From positions 62,001-126,000 of IMG/VR virus record IMGVR_UViG_3300029258_003221: DNA of 64,000 nucleotides; one strand, 5' to 3'. Below the pieces are notes generated by a model. That model was not told where the DNA came from and did no database searches. It saw only the letters and a list, made by a program, of their open reading frames with translations. Positions 1 to 8,802 of the stretch are shown here, one piece after another (position 1 is the first letter of the stretch; the number at the start of each line of letters is the position of its first letter). The position numbers and the translations under genes were made by a program.

Positions 1-99
1 CACAGACACTCCTACAACTTCTACGGACTTTCCGTTGTGAAGATCATATCTTTGATCACGTGTCAGACGAATGTTGTGATGAATTGTTAGTGAAAGCAT
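1..99 (-). CDS. partial hypothetical protein running off the window start (MLSLTIHHNIRLTRDQRYDLHNGKSVEVVGVSV...)
   Basis: Open minus-strand frame from ATG at 99 to the window edge; not in the ORF track. Confidence 0.4.
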   Translation of the reverse strand, partial: MLSLTIHHNIRLTRDQRYDLHNGKSVEVVGVSV

Positions 100-111
100 T
101 TGTTTTGTGTT

Positions 112-119
112 CATACATA
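112..119 (+). promoter_or_regulatory. putative late-promoter octamer CATACATA
   Basis: Same or related octamer recurs upstream of eight genes; resembles the T4 late promoter TATAAATA. Confidence 0.5.
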
Positions 120-146
120 CCTTTAGGTCTTAACTGGAGTGTAACC

Positions 147-1106
147 ATGCAAGGAATTCGTGTAAAGTACATTTTGTATCCGATGTCAATCATAATGAGC
201 ATAGTCATGTTAATTGGCATCAGTATAAGAGTGCAAAGAGCAAACGTTCTGGAAATATCTGTTGATAACTCTAATCCAGAATTGACGATGCCTATCGTTG
301 AAAATGACCCTTATGCACACTTGGCTGCAAATGTAGCTCCTGTTCCCAAAAGAGGAATTGAGTATCGAAAATGGTTGCAGGCTTCTGTTAGAATTCGAGT
401 ATCTTATGCATCAGGTTCAGGCACTATTGTCTATTACGATGATAAAACAGGTTGGGCATACATTCAGACATGTGGCCATCTTTGGGGTGGCATGAAAAGC
501 AACATGTCAGCCGAAGAAGGTAAACGAAGAAAAGAAAAATGTCGTATCAATGTTTTTTATCACAACGAAAAGAAACTTGATCAACCAAAAACATACAGTG
601 CAGATGTGTTGTATTACAATAACAGAGGTGGTCCCGGTGGTGGACACGATTGTGCGTTAATTCGATTTAAGCCCGATTGGAAACCAAATTATTTTCCTAT
701 TGCACCTTCAGATTATCGATATAAACCGGGCTCAATGTTACATTCAACTGGATGCGATGGCGCAACAGAAGCTGCACATTATGATGTGCGTGTCATTGGG
801 TTTTCTAATTCTTCTCAGTTTCCAAGTTTGGTCACTACAGAAAACAGTCCAAGACCCGGACGTTCGGGTGGAGGATTGATGAATGACAGTTATTTTGTGG
901 CTATTTGCTGGGGCACTTCAGATCGTTCTGGTAATGGTAACGGGTTCTTTACACCATTGAGTACAGTACGATATTACAACGAAAAAAATGGATTTGGTTG
1001 GCTTAATGATGTTGGAAGTAGTTTGGCAAGACAAATCCCAATTAAAGACAGAAACAACCCTCAAAGAAGGTATGAACCAGATTACATTCCATTGCCGGGA
1101 CGTTAA
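147..1106 (+). CDS. membrane-anchored trypsin-like serine protease
   Basis: GSGT..TCGH, HDCALI and GRSGGG give the His/Asp/Ser triad; N-terminal hydrophobic helix; GGAG before ATG147. Confidence 0.85.
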   Translation: MQGIRVKYILYPMSIIMSIVMLIGISIRVQRANVLEISVDNSNPELTMPIVENDPYAHLAANVAPVPKRGIEYRKWLQASVRIRVSYASGSGTIVYYDDKTGWAYIQTCGHLWGGMKSNMSAEEGKRRKEKCRINVFYHNEKKLDQPKTYSADVLYYNNRGGPGGGHDCALIRFKPDWKPNYFPIAPSDYRYKPGSMLHSTGCDGATEAAHYDVRVIGFSNSSQFPSLVTTENSPRPGRSGGGLMNDSYFVAICWGTSDRSGNGNGFFTPLSTVRYYNEKNGFGWLNDVGSSLARQIPIKDRNNPQRRYEPDYIPLPGR

Positions 1107-1468
1107 ACGTTGTCTCTCCAAGCTTTACCGAGTTCGCCGATGTGATCAGAATGTACAACAGTATCAAAATCCTGTTGTGCTAGTTGGAGCAATTGTCTCG
1201 CATATCCTTGTCGCCTAACATCTGGCATTGTGTAAACATTGGCAATTTGGGCATTAGTTCCATCTCTTGATACAACCTGAAGGGCACTAACAGCCTGCCC
1301 ATCAACCATGTAAATGTATCGATAAGAACCATGCGGTGAGACATACTTCACCGCACCATTCTTAGTGTCACCGCCCAAATTTTCTTCTGGGCCAATCTGA
1401 CTGGTTTGACCTGCTGGACTCAGAAGGTATTGCAGCATTTCATTTTCTAACCAAAGTTTAAACTTCAT
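1103..1468 (-). CDS. GNAT acetyltransferase with capsid-targeting-like N-terminus
   Basis: IANVYTMPDVRRQGYARQLL = acetyl-CoA-binding motif A; starts MKFKLWLENE. Confidence 0.85.
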   Translation of the reverse strand: MKFKLWLENEMLQYLLSPAGQTSQIGPEENLGGDTKNGAVKYVSPHGSYRYIYMVDGQAVSALQVVSRDGTNAQIANVYTMPDVRRQGYARQLLQLAQQDFDTVVHSDHIGELGKAWRDNV

Positions 1469-1480
1469 GCCTTATGTATG

Positions 1481-2287
1481 TCACAAGTTACTCATATCTC
1501 CATCCCATCCAGATTGCTGCGTGGAAAGAGGTTTGTAAAAAGGGCATTTGACACGAAAATCACATCTTTTACAGTGATGACCAACATTTCCCCAAACTTT
1601 ATCCGGGTCAGATTGTTCAATTCTTTTGAATGTCTTCAAAAGCTCTTGTTCAACTTTTATTAATGTTGATTCTGTGAAAGTCGCCGCTACTAAACTTCCA
1701 CCATCCACGTAATACAAACCTGCTTTAATGTTTTCAGGTTCAATTTCAAACTCTCGTTGTACCGCTCTTGCATAAACACACAATTGAAGATCCTGTGTGA
1801 TGGTTTTTCTTGTTTTTCTCCATCGACCTTTCTTGGTTGTTTTGTAATCTATGATCCAAGCTTTGTTGCCTTTAATGATCAAGCGGTCGATAAATCCTTT
1901 GACAAAACGTCCGTGAGGAGGATCAAGATCGTAGTAAATCTCATGTTCAACAATCCCATCTGTCCCCATGCTATCCATCAGTTTTTGAATGGATCTCAAA
2001 TCTTTGTTGAGTCGTCTTTGATATTCTGCTGGAAGCTTTTCAGGGGCTGTAACGCCTTTTTCCAGTTCAATTTTTCCTTTCAAAACATCAGTGGTTACAT
2101 CACCCAAAGGGATTTCTGCTTTGTGCTCAACAAAATGTTCAGCTATTTTGTGTATGATTTTTCCATACGTGAAGTAGAAAGGCTCTTCATCGTCTCTTTC
2201 TACTTTGAGATGATATTGATATTTGTACTTCTGTTGGCATTGATCGTAAGTATTTTTTCGGCTGACCGATATGTGATTGATATCCAT
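1481..2287 (-). CDS. PD-(D/E)XK exonuclease, Cas4/RecB-like (Fe-S)
   Basis: GFIDRL, IIDYKT and QLCVY motifs; N-terminal Cys plus C-terminal CxxCxxxxxC. Confidence 0.88.
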   Translation of the reverse strand: MDINHISVSRKNTYDQCQQKYKYQYHLKVERDDEEPFYFTYGKIIHKIAEHFVEHKAEIPLGDVTTDVLKGKIELEKGVTAPEKLPAEYQRRLNKDLRSIQKLMDSMGTDGIVEHEIYYDLDPPHGRFVKGFIDRLIIKGNKAWIIDYKTTKKGRWRKTRKTITQDLQLCVYARAVQREFEIEPENIKAGLYYVDGGSLVAATFTESTLIKVEQELLKTFKRIEQSDPDKVWGNVGHHCKRCDFRVKCPFYKPLSTQQSGWDGDMSNL

Positions 2288-2346: not shown

Positions 2347-2381
2347 CGTCAATCTTAGAAAAATACACAAGAGGAATTGTA

Positions 2382-3437
2382 ATGGCGGTCGATTATGACT
2401 CGTTTTTAAATTGGGCGACTGATCGCTTTGGGGAATCAAACATCAAATTCCGCAAAGGGGGACGAGAAATTTGCACCCACAGTTTCTTTGTAGACGGTCA
2501 TCCTGATTTTCCTGATGGTGATCACAAATTTAAACTCTGGATGAATCCAGACGGTGGGAAAAACGAGCTTGAAGGAGGAGCTTACCGTTGTTGGTATACA
2601 GATCATATGGGATCATTGATTTCCCTTGTCAGCATTGTTGATAAAGTTCCATATGATGTTGCGGCAGATATTATCTGTGACGAAATTCCCCTTCGAGCTT
2701 TGGAAAAAAAAGTTCATGATTTTTACAGCGTCAAACAAGATGATCCTCAAGAAACCATAGAAGAAATTAAACAAGAGCTGGAATTCCCACCAGACACATA
2801 TAAAATCGAAGAAGTTCGAGGTCATTGGATGGGAGCACGTGCGTTAGAATATCTTGCCAGTCGAAAAATTCCATCTCAGGGATTTTATGTTTGTATTGAC
2901 GGTGATTACAGAAATCGCCTTGTCATTCCATATTACAACAAAGCAGGTGAATTGTTTTATTACAATTGCCGAACATTAGATAAGAACCCAAAAACCTTGA
3001 GGTATATGAAGCCACCTCCTGAAGATGCAGATCAGGAAAATGTTCTTTATTTCCCTGAATGGCCTGCGGCAGGAAGCAAAATTTATATCACAGAAGGTGA
3101 ATTTGATGCTTTCACTTTATGGTTGTCTGGCTTTTATGGCGTTGCCTGTGGCGGAAAATTTCTTTCATCATCACAAATTGAAATGATTCGTGATTACAAA
3201 GTAGTTTTAGCATTTGATAGCGATGATGCAGGTGAACAGGCTTTGTTGAATATTGGTGAAACTTTGTTGGCTGATGGCTTTCAGGACATGCAGTATGTTA
3301 GACCACCTAAAGTTTTCAAAGACTGGAATAAGCTTTTAGAGCAAAGAAATATCGATACCCTAAAAGCTTATATCCAGCGTTTTGAAAAACCGTACAATAG
3401 TTGGACGGTCAATTCGTTGACTGCCAAAAGGCTTTAG
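2382..3437 (+). CDS. DNA primase (TOPRIM; DnaG/T4 gp61-like)
   Basis: YRNRLVIP, YITEGEFDA, FDSDDAG and KDWN motifs; GAGGA RBS before ATG2382. Confidence 0.9.
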   Translation: MAVDYDSFLNWATDRFGESNIKFRKGGREICTHSFFVDGHPDFPDGDHKFKLWMNPDGGKNELEGGAYRCWYTDHMGSLISLVSIVDKVPYDVAADIICDEIPLRALEKKVHDFYSVKQDDPQETIEEIKQELEFPPDTYKIEEVRGHWMGARALEYLASRKIPSQGFYVCIDGDYRNRLVIPYYNKAGELFYYNCRTLDKNPKTLRYMKPPPEDADQENVLYFPEWPAAGSKIYITEGEFDAFTLWLSGFYGVACGGKFLSSSQIEMIRDYKVVLAFDSDDAGEQALLNIGETLLADGFQDMQYVRPPKVFKDWNKLLEQRNIDTLKAYIQRFEKPYNSWTVNSLTAKRL

Positions 3438-3547
3438 CAAGTGCAGTTGTCGCACGAGCATCCATCACAGTGACAATCGACACAGCTACAAACTGTACAG
3501 TCGCCCGAAGTACAGCCTTCGCATTTACAAGTACATTCGTTATTCAT
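3434..3547 (-). CDS. metallothionein-like 37-aa peptide MNNECTCKCEGCTSGDCTVCSCVDCHCDGCSCDNCTC
   Basis: 13 Cys in 37 aa in CxC/CxxC pattern, no Phe/Tyr/Trp; AAGGAG RBS (3554-3559) and ACTAAATA (3566-3573) upstream; below the ORF-track cutoff. Confidence 0.85.
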   Translation of the reverse strand: MNNECTCKCEGCTSGDCTVCSCVDCHCDGCSCDNCTC

Positions 3548-3590
3548 GGGAATCTCCTTTAATCATATTTAGTCTTTACTCTGGTATATT

Positions 3591-4085
3591 ATGCATTCAA
3601 AAACAATAGAACAACTTCAATATTTTGTGGGAAAAGTTTGTACTGTTCTCACCTCACCTGTAAACCGTGAATTTGATGAGCTAAGAGCACGGGAGCATTT
3701 TGTGCTTCGTGTTGGGGCAATTAACCTTGATGGAATCTGGGGAACTCATCCCGGAAGTGGGATGACCAGCTTTTTTCAATGGTCGCCCAGTTTAATTGGG
3801 ATATGTGAAGAAATTGAGCTTGATCCAAATAATCCAGAACATGCTCAAATGATTGAACAATATGAGAAACAAACTGGACAGAAGATCAAAAGCGACATTT
3901 CTTCCCCGGTACCAACTAAGAAAAAAGAAAAAGATTTGGTGCAGCTAAAAGAGCCACCAAAAAAACAAACGGCACCTGATGAACAAGTGCCGTTTGTTGA
4001 CATTTCAAATTTAGAAAAGCTCGCTGCTCAAACTAAAATGCAATATGATCAATATGATTCAGTCAGAGATAAGCTTTCCCCTTAA
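3591..4085 (+). CDS. hypothetical protein
   Basis: 164-aa ORF filling the gap between neighbouring genes. Confidence 0.65.
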   Translation: MHSKTIEQLQYFVGKVCTVLTSPVNREFDELRAREHFVLRVGAINLDGIWGTHPGSGMTSFFQWSPSLIGICEEIELDPNNPEHAQMIEQYEKQTGQKIKSDISSPVPTKKKEKDLVQLKEPPKKQTAPDEQVPFVDISNLEKLAAQTKMQYDQYDSVRDKLSP

Positions 4086-6131
4086 ATCTTTCACTCTTTC
4101 TCCTATTGATTGCGTCCTTCTTCTGACTCGGTCACCTAAAGGGCTACTTGAAGATTGGGGCATTTGAGGAATTGATGATTGCGTTCCACCAACTTCTGAA
4201 GAAGTTTCTGGATCAGTTTCTGATCCGGTTTTTAGTTCTTCAATTTTCTTATCCACTTTGTCATTGATGGCCATTCTTGCTTCGGCATTTTCAAATTCAT
4301 CATATGATTCTTCTTCTAGGTCTTGTATTGCCATTAGAATTTCAAGTTCGAATTCAGGGTCCATTTCGACTCCAGCTTGTTCGAATTCTTCCATTGCACC
4401 TTTGAAGAGATCATGATTTTTGTATTTGCCCCATGGGGTATCATCTTCTTCAGGAGTTTCTTCAGGAACATCTTCTACAGGTTCATTTTCAGAACTTTCT
4501 GAATCTTGAGGCGTAGGCACGCTTTCAGTATCTCCTAAATCTTCAGAAGCTTTCTTTTGTTTTTGTGCTTCTTTTTCCTGATTCATCCTGTCAATTTGTT
4601 TTTCTAAATCGCTTTTTTCAGGCTCTTGTTCATTTGAATCTTCTGGAGCATTTACATTTGTAGTGTTTGCTACTTCTTCGCCTTTATCTTCACCTTTATC
4701 GATAGCTTGTTTTACTGCGACTTCTTCTGGCGTCTTTGCTTTTACATAAGGAATTTTAAACCCATACATTCCAGACACATGACCAAGTAAGCTTAATGCC
4801 CTTGCCTTGGCAGTTCCATTTGGCTCCCATCTCAGTTTATTTCTAGCCGCTTCATGATTTTCAAGTCCATAATGAGCAACTATTGCATCAAGAACAGCAT
4901 TGGTTACTTTGACCCAAGAGGTATTTGTTCCTGCAATAAAACCAGCGGCCCCTTGTTGGAATCTAGGATCATTTGGTGCTATTTTAGCACCAAATTGTTG
5001 AAGTATTTTGTCTACTGCTTGTTTGCTGGTTTTGCCTACAACATGCGGAGACCAATCATCATCGATATCACTTCCAGCCAAAGGTTCTTGAGGCAAATCA
5101 CCTTGTCCATCGCCTTCAATAGGTTCTTCCTCAGCAGCAACATTTATTTTGCTGGGCATAACAGTAGCTCCGGCACTGTCAATAGGTGGATCAACAGGTG
5201 AATCAGGGGAACCTTCAGGCGAAACAGGTGCTGGTGAATCAGGTGTTCCTTCTGGTGAAACAGGTGCTGGTGCATTTGGTGCAGAAGGTGTTGGTGTTGG
5301 TGAGCCAATACCGGCAACAAGCTTTGGCAGTTTTTTATTGACATAGGCAATGAGTGCTTTTTTGACCTTTTCAATTTCACCAACAATGCTGTTGTTTCTT
5401 TCTAACAGAACTTCATTGACGCTTTCCATTGTAGGATCGTCATGAATCAACCTTCTTGCACCACGAGCAATACCTTTGCCAATATTTTTAGCAGAAGCTA
5501 TTGGGTGAGTGAAAAGTTGCTTCCAAAAACTCTTTGCTGGAGTTGACCCTTTGCCAGTAGGACCACCCATTGGTGCAGGGCCTGTAGGCGCAGGGCTACC
5601 AGAGGGAGCTGATCCTCCAGAGGAGGTTGGTCCACCGCCCGTTGGTGCAGGACCAGATGGAGCTGACCCGCCACCCATTGGACTACCTCCAGAAGGTGCT
5701 GGGCCACTGCCCATTGGTCCACCAGATGGTGGAGCACCATAATTTCCCATAGCACTGGAAACTTTTTTGGCAAGATCGTCCATGTATTTTGCAATACGTC
5801 TGTTAAGCTTTTCTCCCCATTTATCGACTTTTGGATTACCTGTTCCGGCAGGAGCAGCATCTTCAAGAAGTGCAATAATGCCTGATCTATGTTCGTCTAT
5901 GATTGAGTAAACCAGATTCTTACATTCACTTTGCTCTTCTGCTAGAAACTTTTCCAAATAAAAATCAGGCAATTTATGTTCTGAAAGAATTGTATTTGGC
6001 AATCTTGTGTTTTCATAGATTTTCAACTTGAGCAAATCCAGATGCATATTAATAGCATCTTCTATACTTACGTTGTTTTGAACTATACTTTCAGAAAGTG
6101 TTTTTTGTCGATATTCAGATAAGCTTAACAT
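4059..6131 (-). CDS. Pro/Gly-rich, acidic low-complexity protein, possibly head core/internal protein
   Basis: GGxAPSG and PAPVSPEG repeats; many LxE-type sites; CATAAATA at 6157-6164. Confidence 0.6.
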   Translation of the reverse strand: MLSLSEYRQKTLSESIVQNNVSIEDAINMHLDLLKLKIYENTRLPNTILSEHKLPDFYLEKFLAEEQSECKNLVYSIIDEHRSGIIALLEDAAPAGTGNPKVDKWGEKLNRRIAKYMDDLAKKVSSAMGNYGAPPSGGPMGSGPAPSGGSPMGGGSAPSGPAPTGGGPTSSGGSAPSGSPAPTGPAPMGGPTGKGSTPAKSFWKQLFTHPIASAKNIGKGIARGARRLIHDDPTMESVNEVLLERNNSIVGEIEKVKKALIAYVNKKLPKLVAGIGSPTPTPSAPNAPAPVSPEGTPDSPAPVSPEGSPDSPVDPPIDSAGATVMPSKINVAAEEEPIEGDGQGDLPQEPLAGSDIDDDWSPHVVGKTSKQAVDKILQQFGAKIAPNDPRFQQGAAGFIAGTNTSWVKVTNAVLDAIVAHYGLENHEAARNKLRWEPNGTAKARALSLLGHVSGMYGFKIPYVKAKTPEEVAVKQAIDKGEDKGEEVANTTNVNAPEDSNEQEPEKSDLEKQIDRMNQEKEAQKQKKASEDLGDTESVPTPQDSESSENEPVEDVPEETPEEDDTPWGKYKNHDLFKGAMEEFEQAGVEMDPEFELEILMAIQDLEEESYDEFENAEARMAINDKVDKKIEELKTGSETDPETSSEVGGTQSSIPQMPQSSSSPLGDRVRRRTQSIGERVKDLRGKLISD

Positions 6132-6675: not shown

Positions 6676-8802
6676 TCATTCTATTGGCTGACAGTTTTCA
6701 GCAGCAATCAAACAACCTTTTGCCACTGAATAAACTGGATCTTTAGGTCTGATGACACTGCCGATTTCAATTGGAAGATCAGCGTTTTTGAGAACATCTC
6801 TAAACATATCATCAAAACCCGGAGGACTTGATGTGCCACCAGCAACAACAATGTCAACTGGATGATCAAGTCTGGCTTTTTTCTCATGTTCAATTAAACC
6901 CTGTTTGATTCCAGCAACAGTCTTTTGAATCATGAGTTCGTATTGTGTTTTAATTGCTCTTTCGACAAGAGAAACAGGCTCTTTCGATAAATCAATTTTT
7001 GTTTTTTCTTTGTTAATGAAGGCAATTGTTTCACCAGTTGCCTTAGCAGATTGTTTATCAATCCAGTCGCCACTGTTGACAATGGCAAAGGTAAAGACTT
7101 CTGCACCATAAAGTCCGAACGCAACATTAACCATTCCTGCTCCGCAGTTGTGAATAGTCAGTTGTGGACCAGAGAAAGAATGATCTCCCGGAACTTGTAA
7201 ATCGTAAACTTTACCCTCGTATTCTTCGTGTTCAATTGCTTGAACTCTACCGCAGCAAAATCCGTCTTCAAGGAAAATTGATTCTTTGAAACAACCGTTG
7301 TCGCAATTTGTTTCATTCATATTTTGGACAAGTGAAGAACAAATTTTCTTACCAGCAACACTGACCGTCCACTCCATCTTTTTTCCAAAAATGATCCTAT
7401 TTTCTTGTTTAAGAATATGTTCTCTAGGTTCTCTCCAACCGACACTAGATGCAAAACCAATTCTGGAAAATAATTGTTTAGCCAGAAGTATGAGCTTTGT
7501 GTTTGTGTTTCCGAATACGATTTGATCTTCGGAGATCGTTCCATCCGCTCGAACCATTCCACACAGAAGGTTGAAGCATTCTGAGTTTGTCAATCTGTCG
7601 ATTGTCCATGGGTAATGCTTTTCTCCGCTGTCATCGTAACAGTGGTTTTTCATCCAGTTAACCAAGCCTTGACTGTAACACTTCAATCTTGTGACAGACT
7701 CTCCCTTGCTTGTTTCTGTGGAGTTTTTACCAAATCGTTTCGATAAGATTTCTTTGGCATCCTGCACGTAATCTGTTTCGTGTGCTCCAAAGTCAATTTG
7801 AATACAACCTTCTTTTTCACTGATACTTCCATCTCCCATAAAGTATCCCATGAATCTTTGTAGATTTGGCGTAGATTCAATTCTTTTCTTGTTCCATTTC
7901 TTAGAACAAGTTGTTCTTTCGCAGAGATTGATTGAAGGTCTTGTGGCGTTTCTATTTTGCCCAATAATTGGTTCACCAACTATATCTCCAATTTCTATTT
8001 CTTCACAACCAACCCAATTCCATTTCCCGTTTCTTTTGACATACAATTCATGATTATCCACAAATTTGTACTCTTCTGTGTTGTTTGAATAACCTGCGAT
8101 TTGAATTTTTGTCATAATTCCATCAAAAGGCTTGACTATGACTTTGTTAATTTCACTCCATCGACCTTTGTGTGTAATAACCTTATCGCCTTCCTTGACT
8201 TTTTCAATTTCAACAATGCCTTTATCAGTGTATATTTTAGTGCCCGGACATAAACATGAAATGCCGATGCCCGTAAACATCTTTTCTGATAATTCAGAAT
8301 AAACCAGAGCCATTCCTTCATTCAAAGGACGTGCATCTAGTGTCAGCCCTTCTGGTGATTTGTAGGCTTTGAATACAGCTTCAAGAACCTTTGAGTGATA
8401 ATCTGCATCTGTTTCAGCATTGATGGCATTTGCCGGAACGCTGTAGTAGACAAGTTCTTTATCGTTTGTGACATTATCTAACAAACTGTGCATCATGATG
8501 CTCATGATTTGAAAAGCATCGCTTTCGGCTGGGTTAACACAACCGTCTTTCATTGGGCGACTTAGTTCAAGCTGAGTCATTGTGTAAGCCATGTTTATGG
8601 CAGCTTCACCCAATGCATAAGCAGTATTTGCATCTTCTCGTTGAATCAGCGGCACGCCAGCCTTTTTCATCATATTAAAGACAAATGGATTGTCTAATGA
8701 AAACTTCAAAAAGGCATTGACTTCTTTTTTGAAGACAAGATCTTTTTCGTCATTCCTTTTGCAGCTAATCAAATTGTATGTTCCACAATCAAACCCTATC
8801 AA
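6676..8802 (-). CDS. actin-fold ATPase (volactin-like) interrupted by an intein
   Basis: Phosphate-1 GFDCGTYN, connect NEGMALVYSEL, phosphate-2 GIS|CGAG, adenosine VAGGTS, connect-2 YSVAKG; spliced length 338 aa. Confidence 0.88.
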   Translation of the reverse strand: MIGFDCGTYNLISCKRNDEKDLVFKKEVNAFLKFSLDNPFVFNMMKKAGVPLIQREDANTAYALGEAAINMAYTMTQLELSRPMKDGCVNPAESDAFQIMSIMMHSLLDNVTNDKELVYYSVPANAINAETDADYHSKVLEAVFKAYKSPEGLTLDARPLNEGMALVYSELSEKMFTGIGISCLCPGTKIYTDKGIVEIEKVKEGDKVITHKGRWSEINKVIVKPFDGIMTKIQIAGYSNNTEEYKFVDNHELYVKRNGKWNWVGCEEIEIGDIVGEPIIGQNRNATRPSINLCERTTCSKKWNKKRIESTPNLQRFMGYFMGDGSISEKEGCIQIDFGAHETDYVQDAKEILSKRFGKNSTETSKGESVTRLKCYSQGLVNWMKNHCYDDSGEKHYPWTIDRLTNSECFNLLCGMVRADGTISEDQIVFGNTNTKLILLAKQLFSRIGFASSVGWREPREHILKQENRIIFGKKMEWTVSVAGKKICSSLVQNMNETNCDNGCFKESIFLEDGFCCGRVQAIEHEEYEGKVYDLQVPGDHSFSGPQLTIHNCGAGMVNVAFGLYGAEVFTFAIVNSGDWIDKQSAKATGETIAFINKEKTKIDLSKEPVSLVERAIKTQYELMIQKTVAGIKQGLIEHEKKARLDHPVDIVVAGGTSSPPGFDDMFRDVLKNADLPIEIGSVIRPKDPVYSVAKGCLIAAENCQPIE
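7147..8256 (-). mobile_element. 370-aa intein with LAGLIDADG homing endonuclease
   Basis: N-terminus CLCPGT, block B VDNHEL, YFMGDGS and GMVRADGT motifs, VYDLQV...IHN followed by +1 Cys. Confidence 0.95.

Follow-up and report, generated by a model that had tools for sequence, protein, structure and literature searches.

A stretch of 37 codons on the minus strand of a huge phage genome was found to be a genuine gene for a metallothionein-like cysteine-cluster mini-protein, for which metal binding is inferred from composition and context. It belongs to a widespread family that gene callers miss, found in huge phages and in marine Flavobacteriaceae, where it sits in what looks like a zinc/cadmium stress regulon. 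The DNA analysed, referred to here as the window, is a stretch of 64,000 nucleotides covering positions 62001-126000 of a 234,631-bp virus record that is about 44% complete. The features that bear on the gene are as follows, in window coordinates.

3434-3547, minus strand: 37-codon gene for the mini-protein with 13 Cys and one His, comprising the 11-Cys family module plus one extra C-x-C-x2 unit
3554-3559, minus strand: Shine-Dalgarno site AAGGAG, 6 nt before the ATG at 3545-3547
3434-3437, no strand assigned: convergent overlap of two stop codons, the TAA of the Cys gene (3434-3436) and the TAG of the primase (3435-3437)
2379-3437, plus strand: DnaG-type primase (Toprim; Pfam and PHROG hits), the left border of a conserved slot
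3591-4085, plus strand: conserved gene without a family hit in Pfam or PHROGs, divergent from the Cys gene, the right border of the slot
3964-3998, minus strand: terminator-like hairpin (15 pairs plus T-run) found by a consensus scan upstream of the Cys gene, which by inference would stop read-through from the 690-aa gene at 4059-6131

The observation made in the earlier note, that a short Cys-rich frame with its own ribosome site had been overlooked, was confirmed. Translation gave 37 residues and a TAA stop, with Cys at positions 5, 7, 9, 12, 17, 20, 22, 25, 27, 30, 32, 35 and 37, His at 26 and no Phe, Tyr or Trp. The phage does use Shine-Dalgarno sites, as G is enriched at -7 to -11 and AAGGAGA is about 6-fold enriched upstream of its ORFs. 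The frame is the top Cys outlier of the whole record, the next best being 10 Cys in off-frame readings of a repeat. Chance does not explain it: base composition predicts about 2e-5 windows with 13 or more Cys in 37 codons per genome, and twenty Markov-simulated genomes reached only 7-9. The ratio of TGT to TGC is 8:5, which matches the phage's own usage of 0.63:0.37. The DNA is identical in a second IMG/VR assembly and was present in sediment and seawater runs from several studies. Searches for tandem repeats, Rfam families and stable RNA folds found nothing that explains it; a near-perfect palindrome at 3322-3378 (AAGCTTTTAG ... CTAAAAGCTT), inside the 3' end of the primase gene, appeared only as weak miRNA-like Rfam hits. 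One element of the note, a late-type motif upstream of the gene, was not substantiated. The only recurrent upstream motif of this phage, TTGACACC(C), is absent here and no sigma-70-like promoter was found. The 7-mers of that recurrent motif are 5-7-fold enriched in the 80 nt upstream of ORFs (26-34 genes), making it a candidate phage promoter motif.

The plus strand is open in the same codon register (3401-3562, 53 codons), because antisense Cys codons read as Ala or Thr, and plus-strand transcription probably crosses the region. However, that frame has only a TTG start inside the primase gene and no ribosome site, and all 8 of its Thr codons would have to be ACA, against 40% usage in this genome (p about 6e-4). 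A strain 2.1% diverged, represented by a 105-kb contig, differs at two places inside the frame, 3461 and 3473, both of which are third-position synonymous changes on the minus strand (Gly29 and Cys25) and both of which would be non-synonymous in the plus frame. The flanking genes show the same purifying pattern, with 14 synonymous to 3 non-synonymous differences in the primase and 12 to 0 in the gene at 3591-4085.

Initial searches suggested an orphan. Pfam (at E up to 10), PHROGs, NCBIfam and PDB gave no match to the peptide, megablast of the region against phage records gave none, and tblastn of the peptide against phage records gave one chance hit. An exhaustive phmmer search of 1.84 billion representatives returned one spurious repeat protein and not even the query itself, so the frame is not in public gene calls. 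The closest deposited phage is a 595-kb uncultured huge phage with a primase 41% identical, and its equivalent gap holds other minus-strand ORFs. The first 14 IMG/VR primase relatives (L124-L137) had no Cys-rich frame within 5 kb, which looked like non-conservation until other relatives were found through the module itself. Language-model look-alikes with names were all metallothioneins, but with scores below 0.9, so this is a lead only.

The family was recognised through a 349-nt contig from a sediment metagenome, which is 87% identical to the 3' half of the gene over 60 nt (window 3426-3485) and then diverges, but keeps the spacing C-x4-C-x2-C-x-C with G-D before the second Cys. Pure Cys-period DNA patterns in viral contigs had returned almost only TGC/TGT simple repeats, as did a GD-anchored Cys-period pattern in metagenome contigs, whereas a degenerate pattern combining the G-D codons with the irregular spacing was specific and gave 14 viral stretches and 93 stretches in species-representative bacterial genomes. 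The consensus skeleton is C-x-C-x-C-x2-C-x4-C-x2-C-x-C-x2-C-x-C-x2-C-x-C (11 Cys, usually G-D before the fifth), all of which is present in the window peptide, including G15-D16, together with the extra unit. Seventy-seven of the hits are stand-alone frames of about 30-37 codons, nearly all in Flavobacteriaceae (Polaribacter, Tenacibaculum, Kaistella, Lacinutrix, Gillisia, Algibacter) and Saprospiraceae. In an alignment of 44 peptides the window peptide is 44-65% identical to the others, and the three Cys columns that the search pattern did not impose (the first, tenth and eleventh; C5, C30 and C32) are invariant or at least 90% conserved. A profile of that alignment found one copy each in 44 of 301 sampled Flavobacteriaceae species genomes (about 15%), always in a short open frame, and twelve of the weaker profile hits keep the full skeleton although G-D becomes G-N, G-Q, G-K and so on. 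Every Cys column uses both TGT and TGC across the family, so selection acts on the protein, while non-Cys positions are only 25-31% identical; this is the signature of selection on a Cys scaffold.

It also became clear that the family is unannotated. Seven exact peptides from RefSeq genomes and the window peptide are absent from a collection of 15 billion predicted proteins, and a word-based search of 5.8 billion clusters with a 41-residue Polaribacter version found no candidate. None of the 44 family members matched a Pfam family at E up to 1, and neither the sequence nor the profile matched a solved structure. Literature searches for the family, for phage metallothioneins and for DUF3008 found nothing relevant.

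The earlier note had set conservation of the frame and of its position in related phages as a test, and the result was positive. The viral contigs L236 (from a 458,813-bp contig), L237, L238 and L240 are relatives of the window phage, with primases 44-51% identical and five or six neighbouring genes 47-58% identical. A PD-(D/E)XK exonuclease (window 1481-2287, minus strand) to the left of the primase is syntenic in the related phages. In each of them the module gene lies between the primase and the homologue of the gene at 3591-4085 (47-53% identical), on the opposite strand and convergent with the primase, exactly as in the window. The content of the slot varies. L238 and the window hold the module alone (37 aa each, slot about 152 nt), L236, L237 and L240 hold a DUF3008 (PF11450) domain, a linker and the module (107, 125 and 201 aa), and L125 holds a DUF3008 protein only (75 aa). 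The 595-kb phage has a 182-aa protein with a DUF3008-like N-terminus but no module, plus a 112-aa ORF, while L124 has an unrelated Lys-rich protein. In nine others, among the 14 primase relatives found first, the slot is empty (6-94 nt) or the neighbouring gene is inverted, so the gene is dispensable. Thirteen of the 120 best DUF3008 homologues end in the full module, all labelled hypothetical, and a Met just before the module in L240 and in many database fusions fits fusion and fission of two adjacent genes.

Other architectures were also found. The module lies after S78 prohead proteases (the viral contigs L232 and L239/241/243, and the prophage-like Acidobacteriaceae locus L296), after S49 proteases (L233, L234, L297) and between an S78 protease and an HK97-type capsid protein (L235). 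Gastranaerophilales MAGs encode signal-peptide proteins with two or three tandem modules, and a Saccharibacteria acetate-kinase-like protein ends in one module (L287:1466-1921, L293:1994-2461, L318:1479-2744). The module is thus a portable mini-domain, which argues against a modified-peptide precursor and for an autonomously folding metal-cluster unit.

In 34 of the 46 bacterial loci with enough flank a protein of about 179 aa lies directly downstream of the peptide gene on the same strand, with a median gap of 84 nt. It has sigma-70 regions 2 and 4, its best NCBIfam match is SigZ, although scores fall just under the cut-offs, and it ends in a Cys-rich tail. This resembles the CorE/CorE2/SigZ-type ECF sigma factors (ECF44 / ECF238), whose members sense metal through such tails and need no anti-sigma factor (PMC7826278; PMC6851896). 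Forty-six of 77 peptide genes are preceded by a promoter-like motif, TGCATC-N17-GTCT, ending about 25 nt before the ATG. Genome-wide the T-rich form of this motif is very rare, and in the Polaribacter genome G002 it occurs twice, before the peptide operon and 14 nt before a CDF exporter gene. The genomes G183, G113 and G107 show the same pairing, the motif lying 14-25 nt before the exporter genes across the four genomes. A DUF3703 gene often lies just upstream of the peptide gene (L344:1549-1884 and nine other bacterial loci), and in Tenacibaculum discolor the second site precedes a DUF3703 gene next to the peptide. CorE2 of Myxococcus xanthus, which responds to Cd and Zn, likewise controls a CDF exporter (PMC6851896). 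It is inferred that the motif is the sigma factor's own promoter, in which case the peptide, the sigma factor and the CDF exporter would form a small metal-stress regulon. The phage copy has no sigma neighbour, and an ECF-type promoter upstream of it was rejected, as TGCATA-N15-GACTA does not fit the fixed motif. The phage does encode a protein with sigma-70 region 2 (32 bits, above the Pfam cut-off) in a 298-aa frame far away, at 205156-205317 of the record.

The explanation favoured, with a probability of about 0.6, is that the product is a cytoplasmic mini-protein without a signal peptide whose 13 cysteines and one histidine most likely fold around a cluster of soft metal ions (Zn, Cd or Cu), as metallothionein domains do. 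In Flavobacteriaceae the stand-alone gene, the first of its operon, most likely buffers or hands over the metal that the regulon responds to, whereas in the phage lineage the module is an accessory gene in a variable slot beside the primase. The analysis itself established the gene, its family membership, the synteny, the bacterial operon and the shared motif, and we regard the first two as close to certain; metal binding, which metal is bound, the buffering role and what the phage gains are inferences, of which metal binding is likely and the role in the phage is the weakest step. The AlphaFold2 model is poor (pLDDT 61), no RNA run was listed for the region, and plus-strand transcripts would run antisense through the gene. 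The phage uses Shine-Dalgarno sites and the Flavobacteriaceae copies have none, so that the bacterial context may not be that of this phage's host, which may not be a member of Bacteroidota.

The interpretation in the earlier note, that of a late-expressed metallothionein-like metal buffer or chaperone, is therefore only partly supported. Metallothioneins are an operational class that includes the bacterial SmtA/BmtA and mycobacterial MymT families and the fungal and animal families, and in its low molecular weight (under about 10 kDa), its 35% Cys in C-x-C and C-x2-C motifs and its lack of aromatic residues the peptide fits that definition, while Cys positions are conserved as other residues drift. 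The invariant count of 11 Cys equals that of the four-metal cluster domain of mammalian metallothionein. A genomic context tied to metal homeostasis is inferred for the bacterial homologues, from the SigZ/CorE-like operon and the motif shared with CDF exporters in four genomes, and was not seen for the phage copy. As the note held, the peptide is unlike SmtA/BmtA, and indeed it is unrelated in sequence to any other Pfam metallothionein family. It differs further in having a fixed skeleton of its own, usually with a G-D pair, and in occurring as a portable module fused to DUF3008, prohead proteases, a capsid protein and an acetate-kinase-like enzyme. Late expression is not supported, as no promoter was recognised and the gene lies in the replication module, and there is no evidence for a service to Cys/His-rich tail proteins. 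The likeness to Cu-thioneins is not backed either, since the shared promoter motif points to CDF exporters, which typically carry Zn, Cd or Co.

Among the alternatives, it is possible but doubtful that in phages the module is only a structural zinc-cluster domain which stabilises or targets a partner protein, DUF3008 in the replication module or proteases and scaffolds in capsids, the stand-alone window gene being a fission product that works with a partner protein and has no role in metal homeostasis. The repeated fusions, which suggest that the module may be a general structural zinc domain and not a buffer, and the Met preceding the module in many of them speak for this, but no DUF3008 gene was found in the 234 kb of this phage's incomplete record, and stand-alone copies are the majority form in bacteria, where they are tied to a putative metal regulon. 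It is somewhat less likely that the module is a regulatory partner of CorE/SigZ-type sigma factors, a metal relay, co-sensor or small anti-sigma factor, with the phage copy tuning or silencing the host's metal or redox stress sigma factor and not buffering metal. The tight, conserved adjacency to the gene of a sigma factor with its own Cys-rich sensor tail favours this, and no other anti-sigma candidate was seen among the conserved neighbours. On the other hand, characterised CorE-like sigma factors need no anti-sigma factor (PMC6851896), described CorE-like systems are single-protein sensors with no small Cys-rich partner, and the module also occurs without a sigma neighbour in Kaistella, in phages and inside proteases. 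The H-x3-C-x2-C motif of zinc-binding anti-sigma (ZAS) factors is absent, the peptide is too short for their domain of about 90 residues and there was no Pfam anti-sigma hit; a complex prediction of a Tenacibaculum peptide with its sigma factor and zinc gave no answer, which is not evidence either way.

A precursor of a ribosomally made, post-translationally modified product, such as a radical-SAM-modified Cys-rich peptide, is very unlikely. The peptide is small and Cys-, Ser- and Thr-rich, but it has no leader peptide, none of the nine neighbour families scanned in the 46 bacterial loci and none of the window's neighbours is a maturase, protease or exporter, and the module occurs as an internal domain of enzymes and capsid proteins. 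A chance or antisense artefact of a non-coding spacer or of the plus-strand frame is already contradicted by the statistics, the ATG and strong ribosome site, the codon usage and strain differences, and the Cys skeleton and synteny kept in homologues. A more speculative possibility, considered unlikely, is that the module is a portable metal-sensing or metal-transfer unit that works with CorE/SigZ-type sigma factors as a two-protein metal switch, overlooked because the small gene is never annotated, and that phages captured it to control the host's metal-stress transcription or to load metal into capsids and replication proteins through fusions to proteases and DUF3008.

If the peptide binds metal, this is a new metallothionein family, the first for Bacteroidota and for phages to our knowledge and in the library searched, and one that is invisible to current annotation. 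It adds a missing first gene to operons of SigZ/CorE-type sigma factors in abundant marine Flavobacteriaceae such as Polaribacter and Tenacibaculum and predicts their promoter and a small regulon, so that a metal-stress circuit becomes directly testable. For phage biology it shows a small accessory gene being shuffled between stand-alone, DUF3008-fused and capsid-protease-fused forms, and gives the first functional lead for DUF3008.

A different family of even smaller Cys peptides (19-20 aa) was found in marine viral contigs (L009:6849-6911, L110:3082-3141, L122:8424-9107), with the motif C-x-C-x2-C-x-C-x-V-C-x-C-T-C-C-x-C and the stop right after the last Cys, and two copies of a related motif sit in a 228-aa acidic-repeat protein of a giant-virus MAG. 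Elsewhere in the window, the left neighbours of the primase include, beside the exonuclease, a trypsin-like peptidase (60-1106, plus strand) and a GNAT acetyltransferase (1103-1468, minus strand). At 6676-8802 on the minus strand a 708-aa actin-like protein (Pfam Volactin, E 1e-59) is interrupted by an intein (Hint and intein-splicing domains) carrying a LAGLIDADG homing endonuclease.
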